Under the pieces are notes generated by a model, which ran no database searches, was not told where the DNA came from, and saw only the letters and a list, made by a program, of their open reading frames with translations. A stretch of DNA of 64,000 nt from Epithemia pelagica (taxonomy: Eukaryota > Protista > Bacillariophyta): contig OX337238.1 of the NCBI GenBank assembly GCA_946965045.2, positions 992,001 to 1,056,000 on the forward strand, written 5' to 3'. Positions 4,126 to 26,400 of the stretch are shown piece by piece (within the stretch, counting starts at the first letter, position 1; every line of letters starts with the position of its first letter). The position numbers were made by a program, and so were the translations under genes.

Positions 4126-4142
4126 ATGATCACGAAATGGAA

Positions 4143-5849
4143 CTAAGTCTCGTTCTTCCCGAGCACCGTATTCTCAAGCAAACGAACACGACCAGAAAGT
4201 TGGTCCGTCATGATCCTTTGTTCAACAATCATATCTTCCAGTTTGAATATTTGGTCTTGAGGGGCTTCGAAATCACCAGAGAGCTCCACCGTTGCGTGGC
4301 CAGACACTGACAGTGTTTCGTTTTCCATCACCCAACCAGATTCCGATTCATCCTCTGAATTCTGACCAGCATGATTCCTTTCATATTTGACTTTCTTATT
4401 CTTGGCAACAAACTCTTCTAATGCTTCAATCTTCCGAGCAATGGGAAGGCATCCCTCGAGAACGTCAATCTCCTGCAACTCTCCATCAAGTTGGTCAATG
4501 CTTTCTTCAAGCTCTTGCACAGAGCGGAACTTTTCGTCGTGATCACGAAGCCATTCCATAAGAGGAAGCAATGATTTTGCCTCGATGGCCTCTTCCAGTG
4601 CATTGACATTGCGACGTTCTTTATGCCCACGTTCAATCGCACAGGTGAGTGTTTGTATCTTTGCATCCAGCTCGGCACGACATGAATACATGCTCTGCAG
4701 AAAAGACAATCCCAATATCATGGTAAGAGACAACACGACAATGCACCAAGCCAATTTGTCCAATATGTAGCAATTCCAAACCAAACCACACTGCCACAAA
4801 CGTCGTACCTTGATGTGCTCCTTCATGTCAATCAATGGAAGCGTCTCACTGGAATCCAACTCGTGTCCACCAGTGACAACAATTCCGTCCGGCACGGACA
4901 CCATGCTTGGACCGTTCCGTGCAGTCGTCATATCAGGTAGGTTCCAATTAACATTGCGCTCCGTATCCAATATTTCTACGGACTTCAAACTATGACGGCT
5001 AAGACTCAGACCACCAGACACAATGACACAAGACCCCACTTGGAACACAGCATATTGGCGCCGCGGGACAGAAAGAACAAGATCCTTGTGAATCGTCCAT
5101 TCCGATGACGAAGGAAAGTTGAAACCTGCAGTCTCATTTTTCTCTAGAGAATCTTCGTTAAAATCCAAATATTCAACAGAGTTTAATGGACTTCCATTGC
5201 ATCCACCAATGACAAAGATGCGACGATCAACAACAGCCATTGAACAGGAATGTCGAGCGACTTTCATGGACGGTCCGGCAATGACAGTGTGTTGAGTTTT
5301 CACTACCGTATCAACGATTTCAGTCGATGACAAGGATCTTCCATTGTATCCACCGGCGACCACAATAAATCGATCGTGTACCACAGCAGCGGCACATTCA
5401 TTTCTTGTAGTAGACAAACGACAGTTCAATGTTGTCCATTGTTTCTTGTTGGTCGTACACGTTGTTTCCAGCAAATCATCAACATAAATTCGTTCGATTG
5501 AATCCAAACGTGAACTTCCATCGTATCCTCCCAACACATAGACAAAGCCATTACAAACGACTGCAGCATGTCCACTTCGTTTTTGATTCAGGTTTGGTGC
5601 TTCTTTCCACTGTTTCTTGTCCTTTCCCAAATTCATCGACAAAACCGAATTTGTTTGACCGCTTGATTTAGATCCTCCAATGACAACAACTATCTGTTGA
5701 TCGGTTTCCTTGTTCTTTACAACAACCGATGCATGATAAGAGCGCCATCCACCCAAAAGCGACGGCACCGAGTCGAACTTCCATTGTGGTTCTTCATCCT
5801 TGTCAGTGTCAAGAAAGACAAGCTTGGACAATCTCGCTTCTTCTTGCAT
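4143..5849 (-). CDS. Kelch-repeat beta-propeller protein with C-terminal coiled coil; probable in-frame intron 4808-4695
   Basis: Six GG-containing Kelch repeats (VVIGG, YVLGGY, VVAGGY, FVIGG, IVSGG, VVTGG) followed by an E/K-rich helical tail. An AAG|GTACG...TTTTCTGCAG segment of 114 nt is stop-free. Confidence 0.85.
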   Translation of the reverse strand: MQEEARLSKLVFLDTDKDEEPQWKFDSVPSLLGGWRSYHASVVVKNKETDQQIVVVIGGSKSSGQTNSVLSMNLGKDKKQWKEAPNLNQKRSGHAAVVCNGFVYVLGGYDGSSRLDSIERIYVDDLLETTCTTNKKQWTTLNCRLSTTRNECAAAVVHDRFIVVAGGYNGRSLSSTEIVDTVVKTQHTVIAGPSMKVARHSCSMAVVDRRIFVIGGCNGSPLNSVEYLDFNEDSLEKNETAGFNFPSSSEWTIHKDLVLSVPRRQYAVFQVGSCVIVSGGLSLSRHSLKSVEILDTERNVNWNLPDMTTARNGPSMVSVPDGIVVTGGHELDSSETLPLIDMKEHIKVRRLWQCGLVWNCYILDKLAWCIVVLSLTMILGLSFLQSMYSCRAELDAKIQTLTCAIERGHKERRNVNALEEAIEAKSLLPLMEWLRDHDEKFRSVQELEESIDQLDGELQEIDVLEGCLPIARKIEALEEFVAKNKKVKYERNHAGQNSEDESESGWVMENETLSVSGHATVELSGDFEAPQDQIFKLEDMIVEQRIMTDQLSGRVRLLENTVLGKNET

Positions 5850-6747
5850 GGCCTTTTGTCAATTTGGAGAGACAGTGTGTCAAGGAAAGTTTCGTTGAGA
5901 TTTCAACTTTTGATGCGAATCACGATCGAATGCCATTTGCTGGAAGGGTTGAAGTCCATCTTCGTTGTGGGTCCCACACGTTACCATTCATACGGCCCCT
6001 CGTTCTGAACTCCATACGAACTGGACTGTGCAACGGAGTCCAAAACCATCCTCGTCGTGGAGATCCCACATGTACTCATACGTTGATTCCTACATAGTCT
6101 GATGTGTCCTCTCATCTCCGATTTGTAAACTGGTAGGTAGTTCGTCGTGAAGTTCGATTCTTCTGTCCATTTTGCCTCCCAACTCCCAATTCCCGCCATT
6201 GCTTTTTTTGGGGACCCGGAATCCGTGTGCGCGCATGCGAATGCATCTGCGAGTGGAAACGTCACCTGCCCGGCGCCCAGGGGGCCCATGAGAGGCGCCC
6301 GTCGCCCTGCAACCACCACCTCATCCTCATCCTCATCGAAACATCGAACGAAGTAGTGTGCGCTGCTGCTGACCCATGACCGCAACATTACCTGTTCAGA
6401 ACATCATAACCTGTGATTGATTGGTAAGTTCAGATTTTTATGCGGTAGAGTGTCTCCCTGCTTTTTCGAATTCTTTTGATGAGGACCAGTGAAATGGATG
6501 AGAAGACTAGATGTTGTTCATTTCTGGAATCGCCGCTTTTGGTGCCATGGATTCCTCATGTTTGTGTTGTCTGCTCCTCGACGAATTATAGTATCGGTCG
6601 GTCTACCTTCTTAAGATCATTTCATTCCGTTTTGGATCGGTCGGTTTACCCTCCTAAGATCGTTCCATTCCGTTTGGGACTTGGTTTCGAAGAAGCAACT
6701 GTCTGAATTGATTTGAGCCGAAGCAAGCGATTGCCAGATCTCCGAAA

Positions 6748-8583
6748 ATGCCCGGTCCACGCATGGGACCTCGTCCCAAAGATTTTGACGAAGCCGTCAT
6801 CAAGCAAAGTCCAACCTACATGAAATGGCGGCAATTGCGGTTTGGTCAAAAATTGCGCTATGCTTGTCGTGAATTTATCAAAGGTCACGGAGAAGACGAT
6901 GAACGATTGATGCGGCGCATCATGATTGCAAGACGAAACAATATCCGCGATCATGAAACCTTGAAACGAGCCCGTAAAATGGTCCAAGAACAACATCCAC
7001 CACCACCACAAGAGCTGGAAGGAACACCAACCGTACAGGCCAACACGCCAACCAACACCACTGCCCTGTCCACGGCAGCAACTGGGCATGATGTGGCCAA
7101 TGGCAACACGGTGGGGACGAGTATTTCTGCAGCTTCGACCGTTGCGACACCCGATGCGCAGACCCCATTAGTGCTTCCTGCTCAGCCTTCGTCGTCACAT
7201 GCCCCGCTTGGAGCCCAAGTAGTGACCGAGGAGGACCAGAAATCGATTGTGGCCTTGGCAGCTGCGGCGGCTGCATCCTCGACTCTTCGAACAACGGCCA
7301 CAACGACAACCACAACCAATGGGGAAGCAGTGGTCGTCATGCCCTTGGACGATGCCATCTCCAAGGCTGCCACCGCGGCCGCGGTTGCCGTGGCTCCTGT
7401 GGATCCAACAGAAACCAGAGAAGCCATGCAAGTCTCTGAGCATGTGACAAACTTATTAGTTGTGGATGATGGTGCACCCGTGGGTGTCGTGGCTACTCCT
7501 GGAGCACCATCTGGTCTGACCAATTTGTCGGCATTGGATGGAGAACACGACGGAGCGAACGAATCCATGAACGATGAGCATGCTCGTGACGAAATGGATG
7601 TTCCGGCTGTGGAGGCAACTCGGAGCTATCGAGCTTGGAGTGAATTGGAAAATGGTATGGAATTTGTCTACAATCAACGATATACCAAAGGACAAGAGGG
7701 GCACGATTGGCTGTTGCGTAAGAATATTTGGAGGCGCATGCGTTATCGACGAGAAAATAAGCGGTTGGTGGCCAAGTACCAAAATTCCACCGCCAAGTCT
7801 GCTCCATTGGCCATTGATGGGAGTAAGAATGGTAGAAACTCGCACGGGATGGACAGTACTGCCACTGCAGGAACTTCACCACCACAACAGGGCGTAGGCG
7901 AACCCTCAAAGACTGCGGGCGCAAGCTCCAATCTTCCGTTCGCGGCACCAGCGGTTCCCGGGGGAACAACCGCCGCTGCAGCCACAACACTGCCTTCGGC
8001 ATGGCAACAGGCCGCTGCGGCAGCGGCCGCTACAACCAATGCGGACGAATCGGTGGCTGCCTTGACCATGATGGACGCGGCGGCGGTCGAAGCTGCGGTC
8101 GCGGCAGCCGAATCCTTTCGAAGGTCCTCTCAAGAAGCAGCACAGAGTACCAACAGCGCAGCGTTGGCCAAAACCACCACAGCTTTGACTGTTTCGGTAG
8201 GACTGGTACACAATCCTTTACCTACCACCACAGCAAAGACGGGACGCCTGTTGCACCCTTCAAAACCCCAGAATTCTACTATGGACAACGGATTGGACCA
8301 ACCGGGCAATTCAGAGTCTGCACCAAAGTCAGTCGAAACCTCAAGGGACGTGCCAAAGTCGACTTCCTTGACAACAGATGCCTCGTCACAATCCTTTCCT
8401 CAACCCACATCAGGCACTGTAGGTGCATCAACCTCGAGTAATATCACGGTAAGCGCCCCAGTGGTTCATAATCCCTTACAAGCTACTGAGTTGGCTGCAC
8501 AGTTGGCAGCCTCAGTTTCTCAACAAGAACATGCTTCTGAGGGTGGTGCGGCACCGAATATCATCGACGTGGTTACTATATAG
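6748..8583 (+). CDS. Hypothetical protein (611 aa) with two copies of an approx. 55-aa basic domain in low-complexity A/T/S-rich sequence
   Basis: Long ATG-initiated ORF with an internal repeat (Y..W..L..G...Y....KG....L.R.I..R..N). Confidence 0.8.
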   Translation: MPGPRMGPRPKDFDEAVIKQSPTYMKWRQLRFGQKLRYACREFIKGHGEDDERLMRRIMIARRNNIRDHETLKRARKMVQEQHPPPPQELEGTPTVQANTPTNTTALSTAATGHDVANGNTVGTSISAASTVATPDAQTPLVLPAQPSSSHAPLGAQVVTEEDQKSIVALAAAAAASSTLRTTATTTTTTNGEAVVVMPLDDAISKAATAAAVAVAPVDPTETREAMQVSEHVTNLLVVDDGAPVGVVATPGAPSGLTNLSALDGEHDGANESMNDEHARDEMDVPAVEATRSYRAWSELENGMEFVYNQRYTKGQEGHDWLLRKNIWRRMRYRRENKRLVAKYQNSTAKSAPLAIDGSKNGRNSHGMDSTATAGTSPPQQGVGEPSKTAGASSNLPFAAPAVPGGTTAAAATTLPSAWQQAAAAAAATTNADESVAALTMMDAAAVEAAVAAAESFRRSSQEAAQSTNSAALAKTTTALTVSVGLVHNPLPTTTAKTGRLLHPSKPQNSTMDNGLDQPGNSESAPKSVETSRDVPKSTSLTTDASSQSFPQPTSGTVGASTSSNITVSAPVVHNPLQATELAAQLAASVSQQEHASEGGAAPNIIDVVTI

Positions 8584-9800
8584 TCGGTTATCAAAGAAAA
8601 GTATGTGGATGATGGTGACTCGAACAGACAATTCATGGTCCATAAAGCGACCACCGGAAAAAAGATCATTGACTTTGGAGAATGGGGACCCATAATCAAA
8701 GCGAACACTTGACAAAGGAGCGATGTGTTTGTGGGAGTAAATTGAGTGTATTGGTCTCTATTCACGACCTGGTGGCATACTCATGCCTAGATACTACTTT
8801 CAAGCTAACATCTCCAAGGAGAACTGGCTTTCCCTGCTGCAAGTTGTCGGTCGGTTGATAATGCTTATTCTTTCATTCTTCTAGCAGCACATAAGTAATC
8901 TATCTATTGTTTCATGGTTCAAAAACTCGTACGATGGATGAGACCAGAGGTTCGACAGGTTGTTCAGAATGGCTGTTAAACTAGAAACTACCTCTAGAAG
9001 AAGTAAGAGTAGGTGACAAGAGGAGCAAAAGAGCGCTTGCCAACAGAATGGGCACAAACTGCATGCGAATGCGAGGGAGCGAAGACATTGGAGAGACAGA
9101 CACACTGATGATTCATAAACACCCATCAGCAAACAGCAAAACCAGAAATGCGTTACTGGAACTACGGAAAACAAGAAGAGGGAACAGAAAAACAGCTTTA
9201 GAACAAAGTCGCCATGGATCCATGGATACGGGACTTACTGTCACACCTATACACCAATACAGGTGTATTGTGGATTGCGGGTTGCGGGCAGTCATCTGGT
9301 GGAGGGTGGTCGATGTTGGCGCTTCTCGGATCTTGGCATCCGTGTTGTCGGTTCTGTCTTTTTGATTTTTGAAAGAAAGGAACGGATGCAAGTGTACCGA
9401 ACGAAGTTTGAGATGGATACCACGATCGACATGCGCGCTGATATGGTGCGCGCAAACCCACAAAAGCTAAAAAACCCTAGTGTGCGATCCTTTCAGTCAC
9501 GAAACAATGACATGCTCCGTGGCATCATGCCAAATAAGGGAAGCAATAATCCCAAATAGCTATGTTTAGCGGGAAGTTAAAACAGCCGTTACCATTTATA
9601 GCCAAGCGTGCGTTCCGCCTATCTAATTTTCATTTCGACAAAAGAACCTGGCGAAACGACTCGCCAACTTGACTTCACATGCAGCCGCCAAAATATCGAA
9701 AGGACATCAAAATCGCAAAGACACACAACACACACACACAACAAAGGCTCACTTTTCTTTTGGTTCAGCTTCGATAAACCAAAAACTAAACACATTTACC

Positions 9801-11423
9801 ATGAGTGACGAACCTGCAGTGAACGGATGCTATTTGGTCAAGGCGATCTACTCGATCGCCTTGTTGATCTTCTCCATCATTGTTGTGATGGCTTTGATCT
9901 TTGACGAACAGACCAGTCTTTCTGAAGATGTTCATCCGGCTTTGGCCTTTGTTTTGATCTGGGTTGCTTTGTTGTGGTTGTCTTTGGTCGAAGGTGGCCA
10001 AGCCTCCATGGTTGGTCTTCCTCCCATTGACCGTGAACTCTACCGTGAAAGTCACCCCATCTCTTTCCGCATCTGCGACCACGGACACAAGGGAGACAAC
10101 TTGGACCGTTACCTCATGGGCCGTCAATTCATGGTGTTGGCTTTGGTTTTCGTCATTAACAAGTCTGGTGCCCCTATTGAAGACGCTTCTGTGTTGAACC
10201 TTCCCGATCCTCTTGCCAACGCTTTCCTCAAGTCCGGTTTGGCGATGATCCTCATGACTTGTATGATTGGTCAATTGAACACTCAAGTGAATGCTTCGCA
10301 TTGTATGCTTGACTTTATCAATGACTGGGGTAACTGGTTCACTGTGAAGGTTGCCATGGCCATTGAAGCTTCTGGATTGTTGCACGCTTCTTACTTGATT
10401 CAGATGATTGTTGCTGGATTGGCCGGCAAGCCCATCGAGTCTAACGAAGAACCCCGTGATGCTTTCATGAACATTTTGTTCTGGGGCCGTGTTCTTTTGT
10501 CGGTTGGTATTTTGACGTTTGCCTTTGTTGCTACTTTTGCCGCTTTGTTCGATGGCAAGACTACGATGTGGGACGGTGTACCTGAAGTTGTTGCCGTTGT
10601 TTTGTTCTTCTTGTTGATGGCCGTTGTTGGTATGCTTGAGGGTATGCAAATTGCCTTTTTCGCTGTTGCCAAGTTGACGGATGAAGAACGTAACTCGTCT
10701 GTATGGGCGTCCCGTACATGCAACTTGTTGTTCCAAGGAGAAGGCCACAACTTGCCAGGATTCATGGTTGGTCGTCAATTGTGCGTCGTGTCTTGTTTCT
10801 TTGTGATTGCCCGTGTGACCTCCATGGATGTCGAAGATGGTGAATCGAATGTTTTGGGAGTGTCTGACGGTGCTCAAGAATTCTTCAACACTGGTTTGTT
10901 GGGAGCCTTGATTACGACGATTGTTGCCTCTATCGCCTGGCAATTGGTTGCTTCTGCCTTCCCTGTTGCTTTCTTGTCCACTCCCATTACCTACATCTTG
11001 CTCCGCATCTGTTTGTTTTTGGAGGCGACTGGTATCTGTACTGGTGCCTGGGTTTTGGCTTCTATCCACCGCAAGGTTGCTGGATTCCAACGTGATGAAG
11101 TGTACGTTGGTACTGCCGAAGAACGTGCTGCTATGGAACATGGTGACAAGCCTGCGCACACTTCTGAAGTTGGTCATTTGGGCGGCGGTGCTTTCCCTGC
11201 CAACCATGACTTGCCATATGCGTCCACCGGCACTACTCCCACCCAACGCCGGGACCGCATCAAGGAGAACATTGCCATTTTGGAGCACCAAATTGATGTT
11301 GCCTCTAACGACGACGAAGCCGCCATTTTCGAATCTGCTTTGCGCAAGGAGAAGAATGCTTTGCGTCAAATCAACCGTGAAATGGGCCTCAACGAGAAGG
11401 AAGTCGAGATGGAAGATGCCTAA
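9801..11423 (+). CDS. SIT: Silicon (silicic acid) transporter, copy 1, 540 aa, intronless
   Basis: Four GXQ motifs (EGGQ, MGRQ, EGMQ, VGRQ), CMLD motif, about 10 hydrophobic helices and a C-terminal coiled coil. ATG at 9801. Confidence 0.97.
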   Translation: MSDEPAVNGCYLVKAIYSIALLIFSIIVVMALIFDEQTSLSEDVHPALAFVLIWVALLWLSLVEGGQASMVGLPPIDRELYRESHPISFRICDHGHKGDNLDRYLMGRQFMVLALVFVINKSGAPIEDASVLNLPDPLANAFLKSGLAMILMTCMIGQLNTQVNASHCMLDFINDWGNWFTVKVAMAIEASGLLHASYLIQMIVAGLAGKPIESNEEPRDAFMNILFWGRVLLSVGILTFAFVATFAALFDGKTTMWDGVPEVVAVVLFFLLMAVVGMLEGMQIAFFAVAKLTDEERNSSVWASRTCNLLFQGEGHNLPGFMVGRQLCVVSCFFVIARVTSMDVEDGESNVLGVSDGAQEFFNTGLLGALITTIVASIAWQLVASAFPVAFLSTPITYILLRICLFLEATGICTGAWVLASIHRKVAGFQRDEVYVGTAEERAAMEHGDKPAHTSEVGHLGGGAFPANHDLPYASTGTTPTQRRDRIKENIAILEHQIDVASNDDEAAIFESALRKEKNALRQINREMGLNEKEVEMEDA

Positions 11424-12502: not shown

Positions 12503-14125
12503 ATGAGTGACGAACCTGCAGTGAACGGATGCTATTTGGTCAAGGCGATCTACTCGATCGCCTTGTTGATCTTCTCCATCATTGTTGTGATGGCTTTGAT
12601 CTTTGACGAACAGACCAGTCTTTCTGAAGATGTTCACCCGGCTTTGGCCTTTGTTTTGATCTGGGTTGCTTTGTTGTGGTTGTCTTTGGTCGAAGGTGGC
12701 CAAGCCTCCATGGTTGGTCTTCCTCCCATTGACCGTGAACTCTACCGTGAAAGTCACCCCATCTCTTTCCGCATCTGCGACCACGGACACAAGGGAGACA
12801 ACTTGGACCGTTACCTCATGGGCCGTCAATTCATGGTGTTGGCTTTGGTTTTCGTCATTAACAAGTCTGGTGCCCCTATTGAAGACGCTTCTGTGTTGAA
12901 CCTTCCCGATCCTCTTGCCAACGCTTTCCTCAAGTCCGGTTTGGCGATGATCCTCATGACTTGTATGATTGGTCAATTGAACACTCAAGTGAATGCTTCG
13001 CATTGTATGCTTGACTTTATCAATGACTGGGGTAACTGGTTCACTGTGAAGGTTGCCATGGCCATTGAAGCTTCTGGATTGTTGCACGCTTCTTACTTGA
13101 TTCAGATGATTGTTGCTGGATTGGCCGGCAAGCCCATCGAGTCTAACGAAGAACCCCGTGATGCTTTCATGAACATTTTGTTCTGGGGCCGTGTTCTTTT
13201 GTCGGTTGGTATTTTGACGTTTGCCTTTGTTGCTACTTTTGCCGCTTTGTTCGATGGCAAGACTACGATGTGGGACGGTGTACCTGAAGTTGTTGCCGTT
13301 GTTTTGTTCTTCTTGTTGATGGCCGTTGTTGGTATGCTTGAGGGTATGCAAATTGCCTTTTTCGCTGTTGCCAAGTTGACGGATGAAGAACGTAACTCGT
13401 CTGTATGGGCGTCCCGTACATGCAACTTGTTGTTCCAAGGAGAAGGCCACAACTTGCCAGGATTCATGGTTGGTCGTCAATTGTGCGTCGTGTCTTGTTT
13501 CTTTGTGATTGCCCGTGTGACCTCCATGGATGTCGAAGATGGTGAATCGAATGTTTTGGGAGTGTCTGACGGTGCTCAAGAATTCTTCAACACTGGTTTG
13601 TTGGGAGCCTTGATTACGACGATTGTTGCCTCTATCGCCTGGCAATTGGTTGCTTCTGCCTTCCCTGTTGCTTTCTTGTCCACTCCCATTACCTACATCT
13701 TGCTCCGCATCTGTTTGTTTTTGGAGGCGACTGGTATCTGTACTGGTGCCTGGGTTTTGGCTTCTATCCACCGCAAGGTTGCTGGATTCCAACGTGATGA
13801 AGTGTACGTTGGTACTGCCGAAGAACGTGCTGCTATGGAACATGGTGACAAGCCTGCGCACACTTCTGAAGTTGGTCATTTGGGCGGCGGTGCTTTCCCT
13901 GCCAACCATGACTTGCCATATGCGTCCACCGGCACTACTCCCACCCAACGCCGGGACCGCATCAAGGAGAACATTGCCATTTTGGAGCACCAAATTGATG
14001 TTGCCTCTAACGACGACGAAGCCGCCATTTTCGAATCTGCTTTGCGCAAGGAGAAGAATGCTTTGCGTCAAATCAACCGTGAAATGGGCCTCAACGAGAA
14101 GGAAGTCGAGATGGAAGACGCATAA
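12503..14125 (+). CDS. SIT: Silicon transporter, copy 2; protein identical to copy 1
   Basis: Same 540-aa sequence. The only nucleotide differences I found are synonymous (His CAT/CAC and the last two sense codons). Confidence 0.97.
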   Translation: MSDEPAVNGCYLVKAIYSIALLIFSIIVVMALIFDEQTSLSEDVHPALAFVLIWVALLWLSLVEGGQASMVGLPPIDRELYRESHPISFRICDHGHKGDNLDRYLMGRQFMVLALVFVINKSGAPIEDASVLNLPDPLANAFLKSGLAMILMTCMIGQLNTQVNASHCMLDFINDWGNWFTVKVAMAIEASGLLHASYLIQMIVAGLAGKPIESNEEPRDAFMNILFWGRVLLSVGILTFAFVATFAALFDGKTTMWDGVPEVVAVVLFFLLMAVVGMLEGMQIAFFAVAKLTDEERNSSVWASRTCNLLFQGEGHNLPGFMVGRQLCVVSCFFVIARVTSMDVEDGESNVLGVSDGAQEFFNTGLLGALITTIVASIAWQLVASAFPVAFLSTPITYILLRICLFLEATGICTGAWVLASIHRKVAGFQRDEVYVGTAEERAAMEHGDKPAHTSEVGHLGGGAFPANHDLPYASTGTTPTQRRDRIKENIAILEHQIDVASNDDEAAIFESALRKEKNALRQINREMGLNEKEVEMEDA

Positions 14126-14745: not shown

Positions 14746-17132
14746 ATGGTGGAAAGCGGCGCGGACCCGCCGTGGACTATTCCGGTAAACCTGAATCCAC
14801 ACCGTCACACGGCGCGCACTCACCGGCCAGCCCATATCCGAGCACCCCCGCCGATTTGGGACGACCAACGACCGACACGCAAGGCGAACGATCTCATCGT
14901 CATGGAAAAACTTTCCGGTCTAAGATTTCGCACACAAACCAACGACAGAGACAAAGAAAAGCACCATGGTCGACTCCTCCACAGCACCACACCGTGCATC
15001 AACCGTATCGCCAAAACCCAGCCCCAAGAGGACCCTCGGCACACACCGCGGCAGCCACCCGTCCCTCGGCCAACCAAGTCCGCCCAAAAAAACCAACATC
15101 AACCAGCCATACAACAACACCCACTCCGTCCAGTCACTATCCTCCCTGCCACCCCAGCACCGAAGACACGTCGCATCATGAAGAACGTGGCCACACAAAC
15201 GGACACCCGGCACTCAGTCAAGACGCCACGTCGACAAGCAGCAGAAGTAGAAAAAACACACGTCGACAAAAACTATCGCCAGAACACAGAGGAAACACCA
15301 CCCCAAAATCGACAAACCACACTCACAATGCCGAAACAGTTTGACTCGTCATTGGGAAGCCTCCAGAACAAGCCTACTTCAGCAGCCGCCACTAGCCAAG
15401 CCACCATGCAAGCTTACTCCAAACTCGCTCCAGCCAAGAAGAAACCAGCCCCCAGGGAACGTCCCCAGGCCGGAATCATTACCCGCTCCAAGAAAGCCGA
15501 AGCCAACAAGGATCTAGACAACGACCACCAGCCCACTACAGCCGCCCGCCGCGGTACCACGTCCACCCCGCGCCGAGAACCCACCTACACCAACGCCATC
15601 ACCCCTGACCTGCACCAAATCAAAAATAACTACAAAAACATCCATCAGAAAAACCAGAAAAACAAAGAAACAAGCCACCACGACAAACACATCAACACGT
15701 CCTCTCCCACCGACGAAAACACCCGAGACATCGAAACACCAGGAACTGCACACTCCAACAACCACAACACGACTCAACATCAGATCCAAGGACACACGAC
15801 CCCAGGAACGGACAACGACACCACAGCAAACACCCAAGACGACATCAACCGCCAGGCACCAAACACGACACCCCCCCTCGCCACAAGGGCACGACAAACC
15901 TCATCTCCGGATACTGCCAACCCGTCACCAACACCCCAGAGAATCCCCACGAAGGAGACACCGCCACCGATCAAGACAACGAGCAAGACGTCGACGACAC
16001 AACAAACGCGACACCGTCCACGACCACACCCCTTCCGCCTCCCATTCGGAATCCGTACAAATCGCCAACCACCAAACCACTTCTCTCGGGAACCACAAAC
16101 AAAGATCCCCCGTGCTCGGTCCACCTCAACCTCGTGGTTCGCCACAAGGCCAACCACCAAGAAGAAGCATCACTCCCCCGCATCACAGAAACTGCACTCA
16201 AACAACTTTTCAACTCTGTATTCAAGCACCACGAATCGCGAGAGGACCCCATGTTCCTCGAGGTCCACCGTGTGGAGTTCCTCGAAACGAACCAACCAGC
16301 CCGCAAAGGCAACAACAACCGCGGACAGAAGGGACACAGCTGGTCCTTCCACATGACCATCCGACCCGCGCCAGCCAACGACGCGTTCGACACAGACAAC
16401 TACAAAGAACAGGCCATCCGCTTTGCCACACAAATGTGGCACAAGCACCACCAAGACGACTTCCGACACGACGAACACGGGGACCAATGGGTCCTCCGTC
16501 ACGGAGCGTAACAATCCAACCCAACTTCCAACCCACGGTTCAAGGATCTTGACATTTACATCCCGGCCTGCAACAACCGCACGGCCACAACCCAAGGCAT
16601 CATTGCCGGCATACCAGCGGCGGCGATCAAACACCGCAGAGGTTACATGGACATCGCAAGCACCTTGCACGACCACCTCATTGGCTACCTTCCAGGCCAA
16701 TTCCAACTCTTCGACGATTTCAGCTGCCATTTCGGTTGCCGCAACGGCACATTCAGCGGCGACCTACGAAACAAACAGCGAGGCCAAGTACCCGTCGTGT
16801 ACTTCTCAGCGTCCTCACGACACAACTTCGAACTCTTCTTGAGAGCATACAATGCTTTCCACCAAGCCGCCACAGAAAATGAAATTCGTTGGCGCGGAAA
16901 CGCAATCCAGGTACTGCCCATCCCCAAGAACCAACAAACCAGAACGACCACTCTCGAAGCATTAAAAGATCTCGATCAATACTTCGGGGCAAGCGTCAGG
17001 ATCCGCCTCCACCCGCTCAACGAGCTAGCTTCCTTGAGTGACTGGGACGACCTCCCGTCCATGCCGAACTATCAGGCAGTCTTTCCGGAGTTTTGCCACC
17101 ACCAACCCGAACCGGTAGTAAATCTACTTTAA
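14746..17132 (+). mobile_element. Interrupted ORF1/gag-like reading frame of an unclassified element (frame change near 15870, in-frame TAA at 16509-16511)
   Basis: Strongly A/C-rich sense strand like the neighbouring LINE. Frame 1 looks protein-like to about 15870; frame 3 then continues (IRNPYK...WVLRHGA*QSNPT...VVNLL). ATG context TCCACAATGG is the same as that of the LINE ORF1. Confidence 0.55.
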
Positions 17133-17336
17133 TAGCCAGGTTGGGACGAGGAGAAGCTAGGGTGTGAGGAGTGGCTTAACTCCGAGAAGGGCAATAGCGA
17201 CGAGGAGTGGACTGCCCCTGTGAGATCCGCGTAAGCGGATCGAGGGGGCAGTCCACGACGAGAAGCTATTGCCCGACGAGGAGTTAAGCCACGAGGAGCA
17301 CCCTGCGACGAGGAGTCCCCCGGGGCTATTAAAGTA
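17125..17336 (+). ncRNA. 212-nt rod-like fold-back structure: WC stems alternating with tandem G.A-pair blocks, GUAA tetraloop
   Basis: Stems: 17125-37/17324-36 (13 bp), 17143-47/17315-19, 17159-64/17299-304, 17171-82/17281-92, 17189-98/17265-74, 17207-18/17245-56 and 17224-30/17235-41. Loop GTAA at 17231-34. The intervening GACGAGGA-like segments face each other. Whether it acts as RNA or ssDNA is unknown. Confidence 0.85.
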
Positions 17337-17363
17337 TGTTAGCTTCCTTTGTCACGAGGAGTC

Positions 17364-17589
17364 GTGCCGGCGCACCCTAGGTAATTTTCGGTCTTCCTAA
17401 GTGATCGCTTATCTCTATCGATACTTAGTAATAGTTGGCCTATTTAGCTTTTTACATTCGCGCCGGCACAGTGTTAGTTAGGTATCTTGCTTGCGTGCTT
17501 GCGCACCTCATCCGATTGCTCGCGTTTCTCAATAAGCATCATACTGTCGTGCTTGCGCAACAAATCCGATGGCTCGCGTCTATCAAATA
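17364..17589. repeat. 10-bp inverted repeat (17364-73/17460-69) and approx. 41-bp imperfect direct repeat (17494-17534/17548-17589)
   Basis: GTGCCGGCGC / GCGCCGGCAC; CGTGCTTGCGCA....ATCCGAT.GCTCGCGT occurs twice. Confidence 0.8.
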
Positions 17590-17645
17590 GGTACATACGA
17601 CAAGTCGTGTTGTTTACATAGGCGTGACACAGGAATACATAGGTA

Positions 17646-18066
17646 ATGTCTATATATTACTTAGATCCCCCACCCCCCAACGGACATTCCCACGATAATC
17701 TCTCACAGACGACACATTTTGTGCAACAACAATGCAACAACATGATGAGAAAAGGAAGACAACCGACCATGGTGACTCCTCCTCCTTCTGTTGGAGTTGC
17801 TCATGCTTCCAAACAGGTTGATTGTGGAGTCATAGACCTTTGCACCCCTCCTGATGTAATAGATCTTTGTAGTTCGTCTTCGTCGTCTAGTTGCTAATCA
17901 GACTCTTCGGGCGAAACTCTCGTTTTTGTCACCAAGGACAATGCAACAGACGAATGGGATGGCAATCTCTTTCGCCGCTCGGAACTCTACTACGACTGCA
18001 CTGGCTCATCCGACGACTTCAGCGCCTGTAGTTCCGACCCTTGGGTCATGGAAATCCTACAGAGAC
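17646..18066 (+). pseudogene. Small ORF with two VIDLC (SUMO-interacting-like) motifs, continuing in frame past a TAA at 17895-97 to a GTAAG donor
   Basis: Track ORF of 83 aa. The same frame stays open after the stop (SDSSGETLVFVTKD...WVMEILQR). Confidence 0.3.
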
Positions 18067-18302
18067 GGTAAGTTTTCGCCGCGTTTCCCACCATTGTCGT
18101 GTGTTTTCGTTCCAGACGTCTTCCCAAAATTTCAAACCACCTGCCGTGCGCGCGCGCATGGTCGAGTCGCTGTTCTGTTTCCTACTGATTCCTACGTGTA
18201 ACCTACGTATCCGCACTTTCTCGCAAGTGTCACCGTCTTCACTTTCCTCACCCTCATTTTTCATTGTGCATCGTTTTTTCATCGTCGTTTCACAGCCTGA
18301 CC

Positions 18303-21300
18303 ATGGCGATTCGACAATCTCGCCGCCAAATGGAGCGGGCGGCCGCAAGAAACAATGTGGACGCCACAAACTCAACCAATAACGTGAACCCGTACCGAAA
18401 TCCCGGCCGCCCACCCAACAACCGTGCCAATCGTCCGCCATTAACGGAAGTGAACCTTCCTCCTTCCCGAAATCCTCGTCGACAACCACAACAACAAGAC
18501 AACATCCAAGCTACAGAGCAATCAAAGTAAGTGACAGTATGTTCTGTTTCTATTCTTATCTGTCTCATTCTAACCACCATGTTTCCTTTTTCCCTTCAGC
18601 AATGTTGCGAGGCCTGATCCTTCTTCCCGTCGTCACCAGATCGAAGGTCTCGATCTTCCCAATGGCGCCAACGACGCCCTTCTCAACGCCGCAACGGTTG
18701 TAGAATCATGCAAAGTGGATACCAAGCTTGTATCCCAAGCTTTGGTCAAACGGAAGCATCTGACATGGGATGCCGAAAAGGGCTCCATGCGGATTGGTGA
18801 GGTCACCTTCAACCCGCCCACCATGAACTCTTCTCGTGCACGTTCGTTGGCCGCCTGGAGTCAATATTGTCGTCTGTCTCCAACCATATACGGCAACAAC
18901 ACCTTCACCATCCGTGACCTCACTGGATGCAAGGCGTCATACGACAAAGAAAAGGCCGCTTCCGTCAACAAATTTTTGGAGTGTCTTCAAAAGCATCACG
19001 AGATGCACTTTCTTCTTGAAATCGTCGAAGATATCGATGAACTGTCGGGTGGAGATACACCAACGCCACTCCTCTTTCTTGCTCTCCGCGGAGTGAAGAC
19101 TCCATCGAAATTGACATTGTTGAATAGTTGCGTAATGGTTTTTGTCGTGAACCATCGAATGCGGGGTTTCAATATGGAAACGGATTCGGTGGAGGACCCC
19201 AAGTTTTTCTTCCAGCCCAACACAACAATGAAGATGCTGAACCATCTCTTCGCTCTTCTTAAAACACACGGGATCGTGATCGCTCAAAGTGATCTCAAAC
19301 ATGGGCTTGGCAATTACCATGCCTACCTTGCCGACATTTGGAACAAGGCAGCCCTCGTCCGACCCGAATTTGGCCGCCTACCCAATCGTGCACCAACGGC
19401 ATTCGACGACGAAGAAAAGATGCGGACATGCGAGCCGGAGCTTCGGCCGTTCGAAGACGGCGAGTATTCCACGGCTTTGAGCATGGGAGTCTACAAGACT
19501 TCCCGAGACTTCGGTCTCCGCGGCCCAGAAGTAAGTTGTTGTTTGTTGTTGTTGTATTTGTTGATTGTCGCCGTTGTTGTTGCTGCTGTTGTCTAACAGT
19601 TTGGTTGTTGCATGTTGTCTCCAGATAAGACTACTTAAAGTATCCGATTTAATTTTCAAGGCGTGTCTTGACAAATCATACGGAATGTTGGCTGGGCTTC
19701 CCGCGATTATTCTCAAAGAATCTGTGCTTGAGAAATCGTCGCACCTCGCGACGAACAATCTCGCCTTTGATCGAGTCGCCAACGATACACAAGACTCGTC
19801 GCACATGATCTTCGACAACCCAGATGATAAGTTTGCGACGTACAAGATCCTCTTGCACATCATGAAAGTGGCGCACCCGCCAGGATGGCAGGGTCTGCTG
19901 TTTCTAGAGCAGATACCCGCGAAACACCTCAAGGCCCGCAAGGATGGTGCGAAGCACCTCGGTTGGACTGAGCTCGTCCCCGAGACTTCACAGAATGACG
20001 CGGATGGATCTGGCTTCAAGTGTGCGGGTAGATTGGGCGTGAACTGGCCGTTGAGGAATGCCCGTCAACTTGCCATTCGTTGCAAGTTTGACAACGCCGA
20101 GAAGGTGACGTTCCGGACCGGCCGACGCACCGGAATCTCGAACGTTGCCAACTGTGGAGTACCACAGAAGTCGTCGAACTCCTTCGCCCGTCACAAGTCA
20201 AGTGAGGTCAACGTACTGTACCAGGACGTCTCGAAAGAAAATCATGTTCGGACCGTCACGGCCAACTGGTACCGTCCACCCGAAAAGAGCGACGAGGCCG
20301 ACAAAGAAAACACGAAGAATGGTACGTACACTCATTGCATGAATCACTCTTTCTACTTTGTTACTAACTACTCTGCTATTATGTTTAGATGAGAAGGGAT
20401 CCAAGAAGAAAGAGTCAAAAACCGCTTCATCCCCCTCGTCCTCGTCGTCGTCCTCCACCGACATTGAGGCCTTTATGAAAAAGGCCAAGAAGAAGATTCG
20501 CCGTCGCAAGGCGTTGCAGCAGCTCAAGGCTGCCAAGAAACAGAACGACGATTCGTCCATCGAAGACGAGGATTCATTGGCGCGAATCCTTCGTCTCTTG
20601 GACGACAAACCATCCAAGTCGTCCAAGTCGCAAACCCATGGTAAGTTGATTGTTGCTTTGTTGTTTTCTTGGTTGCATCGATCTCATTCCGTCTTCTCTT
20701 GACCACAGACACCAAATCCAAGAAAAAACGCAAGAAGAAGAAGAAGAAGAGTAAGTCGATCGCGGACTCATCATCATCGTCATCTTCATCGGATGGCATG
20801 CTTGAAGTTCTTTCCCGATGTCAAAAGAAAAAGAAAACTTCTCCGCCCTCTACCATCGTTGGTGCGTAGATTGTTTTGTTTTGTTTGATTGTTGCTTTAT
20901 ATGTTCTCACTGCCATTCCCTGTTTCATCACCTTCGTCCACTCCAGTGGCTTCTTCAAAGCCTCCTCCACCACCTCCAGTCGAGCATGAAGCGCCACAAC
21001 CGCCACCACCAGTCGTTGTACCACCACCACCAACAACAACAACAACCACGGTGGCCGTGCAACCACCACCAGCTACGTCAACAATGGACCAACATGCACC
21101 ACCTCCAAACAGTGCAACAGTCCAAGCACCAACAACAACCACCGTAACAGCCATGAAACAACCTCCACTGCCATCTACTGTTACGGCCACGCATCCACAC
21201 CCAACAGCAACGACTGAGCAACAGCCACCACCACCACCACCACCAACCATTGCGACCACGGAACCAACGGTATCCGCTGCAGCTCCACCAGCCATTGCGA

Positions 21301-21813
21301 CCACATCAACGTCGCAACCACCTCCACCACCACCAACCATTGCGACCACGGAACTGCCACCACCACCCACAAATGTGCCATCGTCAACGGCCCTTGTTCC
21401 GACGGAACTCCACACCAGCCACCACAATCTCTCTCAGAATCATCACGGTGGATATCATCGCAATGACGGTAGTCGAGACCGCGGGGTTGATTGTCGTGTG
21501 GAGGAGCACCATCGTGTTGCTTATCATCGCAACAACTGGTACTCCCCACCTCCACCACCATCCGACTCGCCGCCATATCATCCTCATCATCATTCCCACC
21601 ACCATTCTTCCCGAGGATACCACCACCGCCCGTACACTCCATCGCCACCACCCCCACCGTACTACCGTGACCACATCCACCACCGTGGTGGTGGATACAC
21701 TCCACCACCGTGGTGGTGGATACACTCCACCACCTCCAGATCATCATCATCATCACCATCATCGTGGTTCGCGTTACCATGGCGGTAGCCATGGATACGG
21801 CTACCACTATTGA
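18303..21813 (+). mobile_element. Crypton-like tyrosine recombinase gene, 6 exons (18303-18526, 18600-19530, 19625-20321, 20389-20640, 20709-20861, 20947-3' end)
   Basis: All five introns are GT-AG and preserve frame. The spliced protein has FQPNT, G..PNRA...DEEK, FGLRGPE (Arg at 19519), EKS, LGVN, TFRTGRRTGIS, ARHKS and LYQ (Tyr at 20219) in Crypton/DUF3504 order. A K/S-, P/T- and H/Y-rich tail follows. Confidence 0.8.
21678..21727 (+). repeat. 25-bp tandem duplication shifting the frame of the recombinase C-terminal tail
   Basis: CACCACCGTGGTGGTGGATACACTC occurs twice. Removing one copy joins HHRGGGYTPPP to PDHHHHHHHRGSRY...HY* (stop 21811-13). Confidence 0.8.
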
Positions 21814-22314
21814 AGTACCATAGTATTCGGTACGTTTGCTGTTGTTGTTGCATTCTTGTTGATTGCTGTATCATTGTTCTTACCCCTTTATTCACTCTTT
21901 TTGACAGATTGAAGTCGCTATTGCTCTTTGCATGACCATTTGGGTGGTGGTCTCTAGCTTGACGTCTCGAAAGGTACGTGAGAATTAGATGATGACACTT
22001 GTTCCGCGTTCCACTCCACGTTACGTACCAGTTTCTCACACGTTCACGATTTTTGTAATTCTGTCTTGGCATGAAATTTCGTGGTGCATCTCTTTGCTAC
22101 TGAATTTTCCGTGTCGTGTGAAAACTCGTCTGTGTCGCGTTTCAATTATTGCCTACATTTTGATTATTGTTTTTTGGTCTCTGTGTTTCCGTTGCTGTTG
22201 CTGGTGCTTGCTGCTTGATTCGTGTGGTGTTTGTTTGTTGTGCTCTTCTTTTTTCCGTTGGTGCACCTCTTGTTCGCTTTGTGCTCTTTCCCGTATTCTC
22301 TCCCTGTGGATTTC

Positions 22315-22365
22315 CTGGGTGTACTACTTTTCTGGGTGTACTACTTTCCTGGGTGTACTACTTTT
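22315..22365 (+). repeat. Three tandem 17-bp units CTGGGTGTACTACTTT(T/C)
   Basis: Read directly from the sequence; lies about 25 bp upstream of the LINE target-site duplication. Confidence 0.9.
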
Positions 22366-22585
22366 TCATTTTGGGCTATTCTAATTTTATACACTAAAAT
22401 AAAAATCCAAGTACAGTAATTTTTAGGGCTTATGTAGTGTGGGTAGCGTTTTGGGAAAGGTACGACGACGAGTGGTGAAGGTAGCATTCCACCTACACCT
22501 GCTCCGTACACCGGACACACACCACATCAACTCGACGACAATCCGAAACTACCCCGGCTTCCCATCGAACATCCTCCGTTCCACA

Positions 22586-23425
22586 ATGGCGGCGGCGGCG
22601 GCGGCACCGGCTAGCCAACAAAACAACAACGAGCAGGCGGGCCAACCCACCACCCACACGGCAAGACTCCTCGACCTCACCCGTCGAATTACTCAGCGCA
22701 ACCAAGAAACAAACGAAAACAACTCGGACACCACAACGACCCCAACAACAAGAGCACGATCGACCACACCGACAACACAACCACCACGAAAAAGGGCCGC
22801 CCCTTCCGACGACACAAACGGAAACCAGGAACAAGAGGCCCCAACAGACAACGATAGCGATCCATACGACGACCGATACAACTGGACCGCAGTCGCAGAG
22901 ACGGTCGCCCGACAAGCAGAAACACATCACCACAAAGGATTGGACATCCAAACGGACAGCCGAAACACCTTCTCCACTCTGTCCTCGATCAATCGATACT
23001 CCGTCTTAGGCGAACACCCAGAGAACGATTACAACGAAGAAACAGACCGCTACCACGACGGGAACCCAAATGACGTGGAAATGGAGGAAGAAGAATTAGA
23101 CGAGTGGGACAACATGTCGGATTCGGAACGCTCCAGAGCCTTACTTCAACCAAACGACACTTCCCACAACAACCCCTCACAGAACACGATGAGCGAGATT
23201 CAACAAATCACCGCATTCGTTCAACAAAACAACAGCTCCCAACTCCCAGCCCTGGAGAAATACATCGGCACCATCACCTCCTTCACCACGGAAACAGATG
23301 CGCAAGACGCCTGGGAATTTGCGGAGAGGCTTGTCCAGCAGAAACGGCCCTCAAATTCCCCCGTCGCCGGCCCCCGCCCCGGCCATGTGGACCCGCATGA
23401 CAATATGGGCCAAAGGGCCGAATGA
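22586..23425 (+). CDS. LINE ORF1, 279 aa, low-complexity and acidic
   Basis: ATG at 22586. Its TGA (23423-25) overlaps the ORF2 ATG (23422-24). Confidence 0.6.
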   Translation: MAAAAAAPASQQNNNEQAGQPTTHTARLLDLTRRITQRNQETNENNSDTTTTPTTRARSTTPTTQPPRKRAAPSDDTNGNQEQEAPTDNDSDPYDDRYNWTAVAETVARQAETHHHKGLDIQTDSRNTFSTLSSINRYSVLGEHPENDYNEETDRYHDGNPNDVEMEEEELDEWDNMSDSERSRALLQPNDTSHNNPSQNTMSEIQQITAFVQQNNSSQLPALEKYIGTITSFTTETDAQDAWEFAERLVQQKRPSNSPVAGPRPGHVDPHDNMGQRAE

Positions 23426-26400
23426 GCAACACAACACACCCCATCCGATGCTGCCCAGTGCCAAACTGCAGCTGGAAACCGACCAATCCACCAACACAGA
23501 AACAAAACAAAAAAGAAACCATCCTCCAACTGAAACAACACCTAATCCAAGCCCACAACGACACTCCCCTGTCGGACCACATCGACGAAACATACTGCAA
23601 ACGGCACGGCTTCCACGCGTGTCTCCAATGCAACAAGCCCACAACGATCTTCACAACTCCCGGCCACCTGAGAAACCATCAAGAGAATAAGCATACTAGA
23701 ACAACAACCAATTTACAGATAGTATTAAATACTTACAGGCACGCAGACAACCAGACGGCACACAATTGGAAGGCCGCCATCGATTTTCTCCACCACCTGG
23801 AGATTACACCCCCTCCCTTCCGAAGAACGATTTGGCACAAGCTCAAACACCCACTACGCAAAGAATACTTCGTGGCATATCACAACGTCGTACGTTGGAT
23901 CCTCGAAGCAACACCTCCGCTCCGAAACGACACGAAGAGAGACACAAGACCAAGCGCAGCACAAACAGACTCCAGCCCCTTCTGGAAGCTCCTGCTTCTG
24001 ATGGAACCCCTCTTTTTGGCACCTCCAGCCGCCACCGAACACAAACGACCTTCAGAAGCAATACGAGCATGCCACCAATTGTTCAAAGAAGGCAAAATCC
24101 AAGAACTCTACGATGCCATCTGGCAGCCCCCAGCAAACCGACAGCCAGGACAACAACCAACACCAAACCAGGGACAAGAACACCAACACGCCCCCCCCCC
24201 CCCCTCCTTCCCGAGTCGCGGCGGCACAGAGAGCGGCAGACGCAGGAAACTATTCAACCGCCTTCACGAGACTCACAACACACATGCCAACAGCAACTCT
24301 AACGCCACCACGGGTGGAAACCATCCGAAAAGAACTTTTCCCCCCAAGACGAGACCCACCACCGACAACGAGACAAAAGGGACACCTCCAACACCCTCCG
24401 TCCCCAGACCAATACCTCCACCTCGAGAGCAGATTGTTCGAATTGGCAATCCGTCAGATGAAACCCGGCACAGCCTCGGGCCCATTTGCGTCGTGCACAG
24501 ACGCTCTCACCTCCATGGCACTTCACCGAACGACCAAAGCACCGAACGCAACAAGGCCATACTTCCAGAGCCTACAAGAGCTCTTCCAGTTGATTGTTAC
24601 AGCACAACTCCCACCACCAATCCACGCAATCTTGGGCAGCAACTATTTTTTGGCCCTACACAAAGATCCAGCCCGGCCAGAACGCCTCCGACCCATCGGC
24701 ATCGGAACCGCACTGAGACGCCTGGCCGCCAAAATAGCACTCGTCCATGTATCAGATGCAGTCCAGCCCCTATTCGTCAAAGGGGGACAGTACGGAATAC
24801 AAGTCCCTGGCGGCATTGATTTTGTGGCCCACACAACGATGGTCGCCGTCCAAAGCAATATAATCCAACCAACGACACCCACCCGTGCCCTCCTACTCCT
24901 TGACCTCAGAAATATGTTCAACAACACGTCGAGGACAGAGGCGCGTAAGATCCTGCTGCAACACAAAGCAACCTCGACGCTCGTCCCACTCTTCGACCTA
25001 CTTACACAAACGGCCACCCCCTCTTGGTACTTCAACGAACAACAAACAGCCGACAAGTTCATGCAAACAGAAGGATTCCCGCAAGGATGCCCGCTAAGCC
25101 CGCTCTTCTCGTGTCTAGTCCTTCTGGCTCTCACCACCCAAATCAACACCGAACAATGGGCAAGAGCCCTGGCCCGCCAACAAGCAGGAGACCTTCACGA
25201 CGACGGTAAGGGTGGACAAGCGCACACCGCGTCGATTATGGACGATACGTCCATCAGCCTCCCACACGAGGACCTCCCTTGGTTCCTACGACGTTTCGAG
25301 GAGTTAGGGAAACCGCTCGGAGTGGAACTAAACAAACAGAAAACGTACATCCTCACCACCACCACCGGCACATCCCCGGCAACCTCTCTCTCCAACAACA
25401 AAAAGCAGAGCCTCATCACCGCGCTCCGTTTCCTCAACCCCTCCAATCCAGACCAACACGAAATCACCGGCGGCACCAGATTCCTTGGCCAACCAATTGG
25501 ATCCGCCGCCTTCGCCAGACACTTCATTGCACTTCGTCTTGAATCAATGGCGGCAAAAATCAACATGTTAGAGAACCTTCCTGACCTACAAACCAGAAGC
25601 CACCTTTTTCGCTACTCACTCGTTTCCTCCGTCCTCCACCTACTCCCAGTCGACTTGGTCCTGGCCCACCCCGACCCCCAAGCCACAACCACGGTTTGGG
25701 ACAGCCCAGTGACCCAATCCACCCACAAACTCGTCAAAAAGTTCCTCGCACAACTGACCTCCGTCCCTCACGACCAGATCACGGAAACGGCTACTCTGAT
25801 CGCGTCCGTCCCCAACCGCCTCGGCGGACTTGGCTACCACAATGCCTCCTCCGCTGCTCGACCAAGACTCATCACCCAAACCGCCCGTACACTCCAACTC
25901 GCGGCATCCACAGACACACCGGTCCCCGGACCACACAAAACCTTCTGGAACGACTGGAAACACAGCGAGATCCCCTGGCTGACAACGTTCCGACGTTCTT
26001 TGGCCCTGTACGCAAAAGAACTAGCCGGCGACAACATGACCGACCCACGTCGCTTTGATAGAACCACCCACCGTGGATTGTTGCATCATACCATCGTGGA
26101 ACACACCATCCCACAGCTGATCGACTCCTCCCCCGCCCATCTACGTCCCTCGCTCCCATCCGCCCTTTCACCTCTCACCAGTCTGGCATTCCACCTGCCC
26201 AGGACAGCTGAAGCCTTCCGACTGGACAACGAAACTTTCTCCACGGCAGTCAAACGAAAACTCAGACTCCCAATCCTGCCCGACTCTCTGTGCCAAAAGT
26301 GCATATGCAACGCAGGCCCACCAATTGACCCAGAAGGGGACCATCTGTTCTCGTGTGCTGCAGCGTCCAAGACTGCCCTCTCCAACACACTGCGTGATTC

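Follow-up and report, generated by a model that had tools for sequence, protein, structure and literature searches.

A 212-nucleotide (nt) hairpin in the genome of the diatom Epithemia pelagica, at 17125–17336 of the 64,000-nt stretch of contig OX337238.1 that we analysed (the window), forms the left end of a Crypton-like transposable element of 5,366 bp, in which a tyrosine recombinase is the only conserved gene, and is not a free-standing RNA gene. Its stems covary among related elements, its purine-rich internal loops stay the same, and its outer part pairs with the opposite end of the element when the two ends are joined. We therefore favour, at a probability of roughly 0.55, the reading that it is a cis-acting, strand-specific folded recombination site of this transposon.

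A purine-interrupted rod with a periodic motif

On re-reading the window, we found the sequence at 17125–17336 to agree with a first-pass annotation that had reported a 212-nt rod with blocks of tandem G.A pairs. Folded as RNA, the + strand forms a single unbranched rod closed by a GTAA loop, with a minimum free energy (MFE) of −138.8 kcal/mol compared to −67.2 ± 4.3 for dinucleotide shuffles (z −16.7), none of the 200 shuffles being as good. The − strand of the same segment folds too, but more weakly (−118.3 kcal/mol, z −15.1). Parsing of the MFE structure revealed that most interruptions are symmetric, being either 2x2 loops (GA/GA or GA/AA) or 5x5 loops (GAGGA/GAGGA) with single C-G or G-C pairs between them, a run of tandem 5'-GA-3'/3'-AG-5' mismatches. 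Mismatches of this type stack unusually strongly in DNA as well as in RNA (PMC8163305). The reported rod is thus real in sequence, in fold and in the symmetry of its GA loops.

Underlying these loops is a recurrent motif, GACGAGGAG, which with at most one mismatch occurs in seven copies on the + strand between 17145 and 17361. Those of the left arm start at 17145, 17163, 17181 and 17199, an exact 18-nt period. At the same mismatch threshold no second cluster of this kind was found in the 64-kb window, which holds 46 GACGAGGAG matches in all compared to 12.9 ± 3.3 expected. The motif has the same orientation on both arms, in agreement with the earlier remark that the rod is not a simple inverted duplication, and the copies on the two arms face each other in exact register as symmetric loops.

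Boundaries of the element and its insertion site

To delimit the element we relied on further copies and on the gene that it interrupts. Seven elements were compared, namely the window copy and L001 (family A), L002 and L003 (family B), L004 (family C), and L005 and L008 (family D), all from assembly ERZ21939226. L001 (3421–8753) is 97.6% identical to the window element over about 5.38 kb, the matching stretch being 17106–22486. This homology ends sharply on both sides, where the flanks are unrelated. Because the flanks share no detectable protein similarity, the two copies are independent insertions, and a single duplicated insertion was rejected on the same ground. L001 itself lies just upstream of a large open reading frame (ORF) with a weak Exo_endo_phos match, in flanks unrelated to those of the window.

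The upstream ORF of the window (16647–17132) is interrupted after 157 codons and one base; when the element is removed, reading resumes in frame at 22485 for 312 more codons. The restored host ORF has about 470 codons and is followed by an ORF with an RVT_1 domain at 24113–27253. The element is thus inserted inside a retroelement gene, and since the host ORF resumes in frame beyond it, the stop of that ORF at the start of the hairpin is an accident of insertion. Functional coupling of the upstream ORF to the hairpin, which the first-pass annotation had suggested, was rejected for this reason. Among the roles listed there, a single-stranded DNA end structure comes closest to our reading, whereas recoding or reverse transcriptase recruitment on behalf of the upstream ORF is unlikely, as that ORF is merely split by the insertion.

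The last four nucleotides of the left flank are GTAG in the window and in L003, GTCG in L001 and L002, GTTG in L004, GTAG in L005 and CTAG in L008. The right end of the element is always GTAG (families A–C) or TTAG (family D), in all seven elements. Left and right tetranucleotides are identical in the window and L003 and differ at one position in L001, L002, L004, L005 and L008. The left tetranucleotide, varying by insertion, would then be flank and the right one the element's own, a pattern expected if one strand were exchanged precisely 3' of the tetranucleotide. By the same comparison, the crossover point would lie directly 5' of TAAATC (17119). The features so delimited, together with those described below, are collected in Table 1.

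Table 1. Features of the Crypton-like element and its insertion site, in window coordinates
Feature	Position	Strand	Basis
Crypton-like element, family A, 5,366 bp	17119..22484	+	Limits of homology to L001; resumption of host ORF
5' part of split host retroelement ORF, outside the element	16647..17118	+	ORF continuity
3' continuation of split host ORF, outside the element	22485..23425	+	Open in frame, 312 codons
Left flank GGTAG, target tetra/pentanucleotide resembling the right end of the element	17114..17118	+	Junction comparison
Left terminal hexamer TAAATC	17119..17124	+	Start of homology to L001
Rod hairpin with GA/GA loops, 212 nt	17125..17336	+	Fold, shuffles, covariation
R', post-rod segment complementary to the right terminus, with one further CGAGGAG loop	17337..17368	+	Junction fold
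Short conserved coding-like segment	17898..18068	+	tblastn, 36–40% identity over 45–48 aa in L002 and L005
Recombinase N-terminal exon, 272 codons	18715..19530	+	ORF; ends at GTAAGT; tblastn in all families, 30–47% identity
Intron GTAAGT...CAG, 94 nt, predicted from sequence	19531..19624	+	Frame restored across intron
Recombinase catalytic exon, 255 codons and stop	19625..20392	+	Motifs; structural and language-model matches
Right-subterminal block common to families A and B, about 90% over 29 nt	22390..22418	+	blastn
R, right-terminal segment containing GACGACGAG, pairs with 17337–17368 in joined ends	22459..22484	+	Junction fold

Covarying stems and persistent purine loops

In family D, the recombinase is only about 36–39% identical to that of the window copy. 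A GA rod is present in all seven elements, on the strand that encodes the recombinase; it begins with the first bases of the element and lies about 2.0–2.5 kb upstream of the catalytic exon. No other fold in the scanned loci of L004, L005 and L008 is as strong. A comparison of families A and B shows the rod to be the best-conserved DNA (79% identity); outside it, only two short stretches (57 and 134 nt; 67–77%) match in L002, and none in L003. Within family D, the rod is 90.5% identical compared to 68–76% for the rest. A blastn search of roughly 150 kb of sequence from the same genome found no rods or ends in addition to those of the seven elements.

This conservation is of structure as well as sequence. 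In an alignment of the family A, B and C rods, 94.2% of cells are paired and 21 of the 70 pairs have changed on both sides, a number that 500 column shuffles never reached; with the partner columns displaced by 1–3 positions, 3–5 such pairs are left. Family D has entirely different stems with the same GACGAGGAG/GACGAGAAG loops. Across the four families, with their differing stems, the motif is kept as the sequence (G/C)(A/C)CGAG(G/A)AG, and non-complementary purine loops stand at 8–13 positions per rod. Stems that covary around a purine motif that stays support selection on structure, as had been proposed from the window copy, and the compensatory changes and conserved GA blocks to be looked for among homologues were both found, in rods of one assembly. 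The GNRA loop singled out in the first-pass annotation is present as GTAA in the window rod and is not a conserved feature, its place being taken by ATA, GTCA or GCAT in other families.

A motif that outlasts its stems also invites a different explanation, in which its copies form an array of double-stranded DNA binding sites, like the arm-type sites of lambda-family integrases or plasmid iterons, read by the N-terminal half of the recombinase or by a host protein in assembling a recombination complex, with folding secondary or irrelevant. Apart from the sequence conservation, the direct orientation of all copies and their regular 18-nt spacing in the left arm fit such an array, the 272-aa N-terminal exon could bind DNA, and a relative, L129, has direct and inverted GGGAAATACT repeat arrays in place of the rod. 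What binding sites in a duplex leave unexplained are the mirrored complementary spacers with their compensatory changes, the exact register in which motifs face each other as symmetric loops, and the complementarity that, in each of the four families, extends over the joint to the right end (see below). We consider this explanation unlikely, though deserving of serious attention.

The right end pairs with the segment that follows the rod

The rod as first delimited proved to be the core of a longer structure, which also takes in 17119–17124, 17337–17368 and, over the joint between the element ends, 22459–22484. When the ends were joined in silico the rod lengthened, 22459–22484 (R) pairing with 17337–17368 (R') to add two stems and a further purine loop of the CGAG type. 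The R/R' duplex of the window has an energy of −39.1 kcal/mol compared to −22.0 ± 4.9 for the null, with none of 679 other windows of sequence as good. The same was true of every element examined: in all seven, the right-terminal 45 nt were the best partner of the post-rod segment, none of the 489–679 other 45-nt windows being as good, and duplex energies ranged from −39 to −55 kcal/mol compared to about −20 ± 5. The paired right-terminal stretch is 26–45 nt long in the seven elements. The outer stems differ by family, being GGTACGAC/GTCGTGCC in A, TACATCCC/GGGATGTA in B, TACCTAGGCAA/TTGCCTAGGTA in C and a 40-nt repeat in D, and those of L005 and L008 show compensatory differences.

R, the rod and R' thus make up a joined site of about 276 nt, an imperfect palindrome whose two parts are separated on integration. 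Its crossover, whose position we infer from the copy boundaries, falls between ...GGTAG and TAAATC..., in a partly paired 9x9 stretch between stems of 10 and 13 bp.

A copy with a flipped inner hairpin

L001 matches the window except that 17190–17292 (L001:3506–3608) is replaced by the reverse complement of 17171–17273. Its inner hairpin is consequently flipped, so that the apex and two loops are now pyrimidine on the + strand, and one purine loop has become perfect duplex. Template switching at a quasi-palindrome classically results in just such an asymmetric inversion combined with conversion (the Ripley model). The flip in L001 looks like such an event, occurring at the DNA level, and, judged from the two sequences, suggests that the arms pair as DNA in vivo.

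Copying from arm to arm, for which L001 is evidence, might by itself keep the arms complementary, the rod then being a selfish or neutral quasi-palindrome without a role in transposition. Such copying should, however, erase non-complementary loops, yet 8–13 of them persist in each rod of four diverged families. Nor would it account for the rod being the best-conserved DNA of the element, constant in terminus and strand and matched by the right end. We regard a neutral origin as very improbable.

The recombinase gene

The ORFs at 18715–19596 and 19565–20392, spliced over the predicted intron, give a 527-codon gene. We accept this two-exon gene as probably encoding a Crypton-type tyrosine recombinase on the strength of several lines of evidence, each of them moderate when taken singly. 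In 30 homologues, RR 167/168, RH 189/190 and Y199 are nearly invariant, and we propose R50 as the first catalytic Arg. An AlphaFold model of the second exon (predicted local distance difference test score, pLDDT, 76.5) aligned in VIA-align with Cre (Z 6.4), with the Crypton-derived DUF3504 domain of QRICH1 (Z 5.7) and with Tn1549 Int (Z 4.3), topoisomerase IB being also among the best neighbours. Foldseek matches against the PDB were non-significant (E above 0.8), the top ones all having the tyrosine recombinase/topoisomerase IB fold, and the nearest ESM-Atlas clusters bear DUF3504 and Phage_integrase (score 0.97, 170 shared features). Pfam matches among the homologues were weak, with Phage_integrase in 3 of 30 (best E 0.002). 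For the window recombinase Pfam returned nothing even at E 10, and a profile built from the recombinase alignment had no match among PDB sequences. The N-terminal exon has no assigned fold.

Protein-level conservation between families is confined to the two recombinase exons and the short coding-like segment near 17900, which is possibly an upstream exon of the same gene. None of the ORFs scanned in 17119–22484 (the two recombinase ORFs, 20889–21788, 17926–18198 and 21989–22381) has a Pfam family, and none encodes a reverse transcriptase. The association with a tyrosine recombinase gene noted in the first-pass annotation is thus that of a terminus with the element that encodes the enzyme. An exhaustive HMMER search with the catalytic exon yielded 82 relatives, and all those looked up on long contigs belong to the one ENA assembly, ERZ21939226. 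A transcript of Entomoneis paludosa (MMETSP1065; P0014) encodes a 1,027-aa protein with the same recombinase domain (34% identity over residues 507–729) fused to a long N-terminal region; relatives are therefore expressed in another diatom.

The position of the rod upstream of this gene raises the question of whether it works as RNA, be it as a leader or regulatory element (maybe across the joint of a circle), as a protein-binding or packaging signal, or as a precursor of silencing small RNAs. At all seven loci the recombinase is encoded on the purine strand, the + strand is by far the stabler with RNA parameters (by 10–23 kcal/mol in the six unflipped rods), and tandem GA pairs are frequent protein-binding motifs in RNA. 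Against this, the rod occupies the very first bases of the element, beyond the reach of an internal promoter, and the coding-like segment starts only at about 17898. The outer fold requires a right end that lies 5.4 kb off, the GNRA character of the apical loop is not conserved, and the inversion in L001 happened at the DNA level. Moreover, cmscan with Rfam 15 (E up to 1; 16000–18500, both strands) gave no matches, in line with the earlier statement that no RNA family could be recognised. A function as RNA appears to us quite unlikely.

Sequencing depth at the element ends

A search of sequencing runs turned up one metagenome and three assembled-contig runs of one organism (X1–X3), and no RNA run. 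The region is covered by the three runs X1–X3 only, which behave as genomic DNA, with contigs of up to 500 kb and the intron retained. Summed k-mer depth was about 70–140 in the flanks and about 500–1,200 over the element body in X1 and X2, being higher and uneven in X3. It rose to about 7,000–10,600 in bin 17094–17287 and to about 3,300–6,500 in bin 17288–17481, so that the left-end bins (17094–17481) have roughly 5–10 times the depth of the body, depths not being copy numbers. Contigs diverge past about 17407–17430 and before about 22401 (right-end bin 22332–22525). The ends thus seem to be common to many more sequences than the body, as sibling or non-autonomous elements would be.

Two observations in X3 concern single parts of the element. 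At 17197–17256, one contig skips 58 nt between the GACGAG motifs on either side of the apical hairpin, and this copy without an apex probably arose by deletion between direct motif copies. Depth in the same run reaches about 10,000x at 21556–22137, and part of the right half of the element is therefore a high-copy repeat.

The rod as a proposed folded recombination site

We propose the following course of events. In the integrated copy, the left end (17119–17368) consists of the terminal hexamer, the 212-nt rod and the 32-nt R', and the last 26 nt of the element (R) are complementary to R'. Were the element excised as a circle, R, rod and R' would come together as one imperfect palindrome of about 276 nt with the crossover inside it. 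Because the purine motif runs the same way on both arms, only the + strand could close its gaps with stacked tandem G.A pairs, and the − strand would be left with pyrimidine-pyrimidine loops. The recombinase would then act on the folded site, be it a hairpin of single-stranded DNA or a cruciform's purine arm, with intrastrand pairing making the duplex that it binds and cuts around the crossover. The GA zipper would restrict the fold to one strand, much as happens at integron attC and at the attP of CTX phage. By interrupting the symmetry of the double-stranded palindrome, the GA series might also keep the palindrome stable in the genome. The more specific proposal, that a eukaryotic nuclear transposon recombines via a folded single-stranded DNA hairpin in the manner of attC or CTX, with the strand selected by a periodic zipper of tandem sheared G.A pairs, we advance tentatively, as somewhat less probable than not.

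Several findings weigh against a folded recombination site. The advantage of the + strand in the six unflipped rods, marked with RNA parameters, is small with DNA parameters (1.8–4.5 kcal/mol), a set that probably underestimates the asymmetry. Template switching can keep arms complementary without selection, so covariation alone overstates selection, and the motif is conserved in sequence besides its purine content, which leaves room for sequence-specific protein binding. The identification of the recombinase leans on middling structural scores together with motif and language-model evidence, Pfam being silent. Among the assembled contigs, which drop rare forms, none joins 22484 to 17119, and neither an empty-site allele nor a spliced form was found. 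All seven rods come from a single assembly. Distant recombinase relatives from other samples (L009, L129–L132) had no GA rod in 0.8–2.7 kb of upstream flank, and when metagenomes were scanned for three spaced GACGAGRAG motifs, at least 119 loci came up, with rod architecture at none of the 123 motif sites folded. The best rod-like match of that scan, L068, was rejected: it is an inverted tandem repeat of the ordinary kind, with the pyrimidine complement as its second arm.

In favour of the folded site, the strongest functional argument is that non-complementary purine loops persist in four families together with a fixed position, a fixed strand and a matching right end. Also on its side are the greater predicted stability of the + strand with either parameter set in the six unflipped rods, the strong stacking of tandem GA-AG steps in DNA, the junction tetranucleotides, the flipped hairpin of L001, the excess of depth at the ends and the precedent of attC.

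One of the distant relatives, L129, has several direct and inverted GGGAAATACT copies downstream of its gene (L129:3340–3607) and no GA rod; these arrays would be a more conventional repeat-array end.

The elements offer a large, conserved and delimited Crypton cis site, with covarying stems, non-covarying G.A loops and a crossover inside the fold. To this the window adds proof of the boundaries from an in-frame host ORF, joint-pairing statistics from four families, the flipped L001 variant and the excess of depth at the ends. Use of the folded purine strand by the recombinase, if true, would extend to eukaryotes a kind of tyrosine recombination on hairpin substrates that bacterial integrons and CTX phage exemplify, and would be a new use of tandem G.A pairs as a strand-specific structural code in DNA. 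Should the motifs instead serve as binding sites in duplex DNA, the end architecture of a Crypton would nonetheless have been defined for the first time. A compact pair of recombinase and hairpin site might also interest genome engineers.

Other features of the element and its surroundings

Between the rod and the recombinase gene, a 54-nt unit occurs twice in tandem (17479–17586; 78% identity), which could be a promoter or binding region. The right half of the element contains, at 20889–21788 and 21014–21367, an ORF without an assigned family (20889–21788) and low-complexity CCACCACC-type repeats. Outside the element, Pfam on ten ORFs of the 9.7–24.8 kb region identified silicon transporters only. 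These are two tandem genes, at 9669–11423 (Silic_transp, E 2.5e-227) and 12503–14125, which lie 2.7 kb apart and have a 300-nt stretch 98% identical between them, pointing to a recent tandem duplication.

Comparison with known systems

Of the classes of eukaryotic DNA transposons, Cryptons are understood least; their ends are called featureless, and the chemistry of their transposition unstudied (PMC3212892). In 2011 Kojima and Jurka described them as being without terminal inverted repeats or conserved non-coding sequence, with short (4–6 bp) direct repeats at their termini that are taken to be recombination substrates, and in CryptonS of oomycetes and Phaeodactylum the termini are mostly TATGG (PMC3212892). 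The elements described here resemble Cryptons in having a tyrosine recombinase of the DUF3504/Phage_integrase type as their sole conserved gene and no reverse transcriptase, a short direct-repeat-like tetranucleotide at the ends of all seven copies, a low copy number and a stramenopile host. They differ in that the left end is a GA-interrupted hairpin of 150–212 nt, conserved across families, and that a segment just inside this end is complementary to the right terminus; their termini, GTAG or TTAG, also set them apart from CryptonS. The first-pass annotation had allowed that the rod might match a described transposon terminus. It is indeed the terminus of a transposable element, and our search of the literature found no description of a GA-interrupted hairpin terminus. 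We therefore describe a Crypton-like element with a previously undescribed folded end.

DIRS1-type retroelements have inverted terminal repeats and an internal complementary region, carry genes for reverse transcriptase and RNase H, and transpose by way of RNA. The family is among those named in PMC3212892. The likeness to it lies in a tyrosine recombinase, an internal segment complementary to a terminus and ends that are matched only when joined or circular. Unlike DIRS1, the present element has no reverse transcriptase in 17119–22484.

A k-turn requires an asymmetric loop with a 3-nt bulge. The rod has in common with k-turns and SECIS elements, to which it had been likened, tandem sheared G.A/A.G pairs beside Watson–Crick stems. 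The likeness goes no further, as the loops here are symmetric (2x2 or 5x5), have no 3-nt bulge, are repeated 8–13 times and find no match in Rfam.

The closest parallel is with the attC sites of integrons, where a tyrosine recombinase uses one folded strand, chosen by unpaired features; these bacterial sites measure 57–141 nt and have a few extrahelical bases and an unpaired central spacer (PMC5027507, PMC3053210). Like attC, and like CTX-phage attP, the joined site is an imperfect palindrome in which structure is conserved above sequence and the crossover, as placed by the copy boundaries, falls within the stem. As in attC, unpaired features are predicted to make one strand the substrate, and the junction pattern is compatible with a single-strand exchange. 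Unlike attC, the site described here is eukaryotic, is about 276 nt long and is split between the two ends of the element, and its strand feature is a periodic series of tandem G.A pairs.

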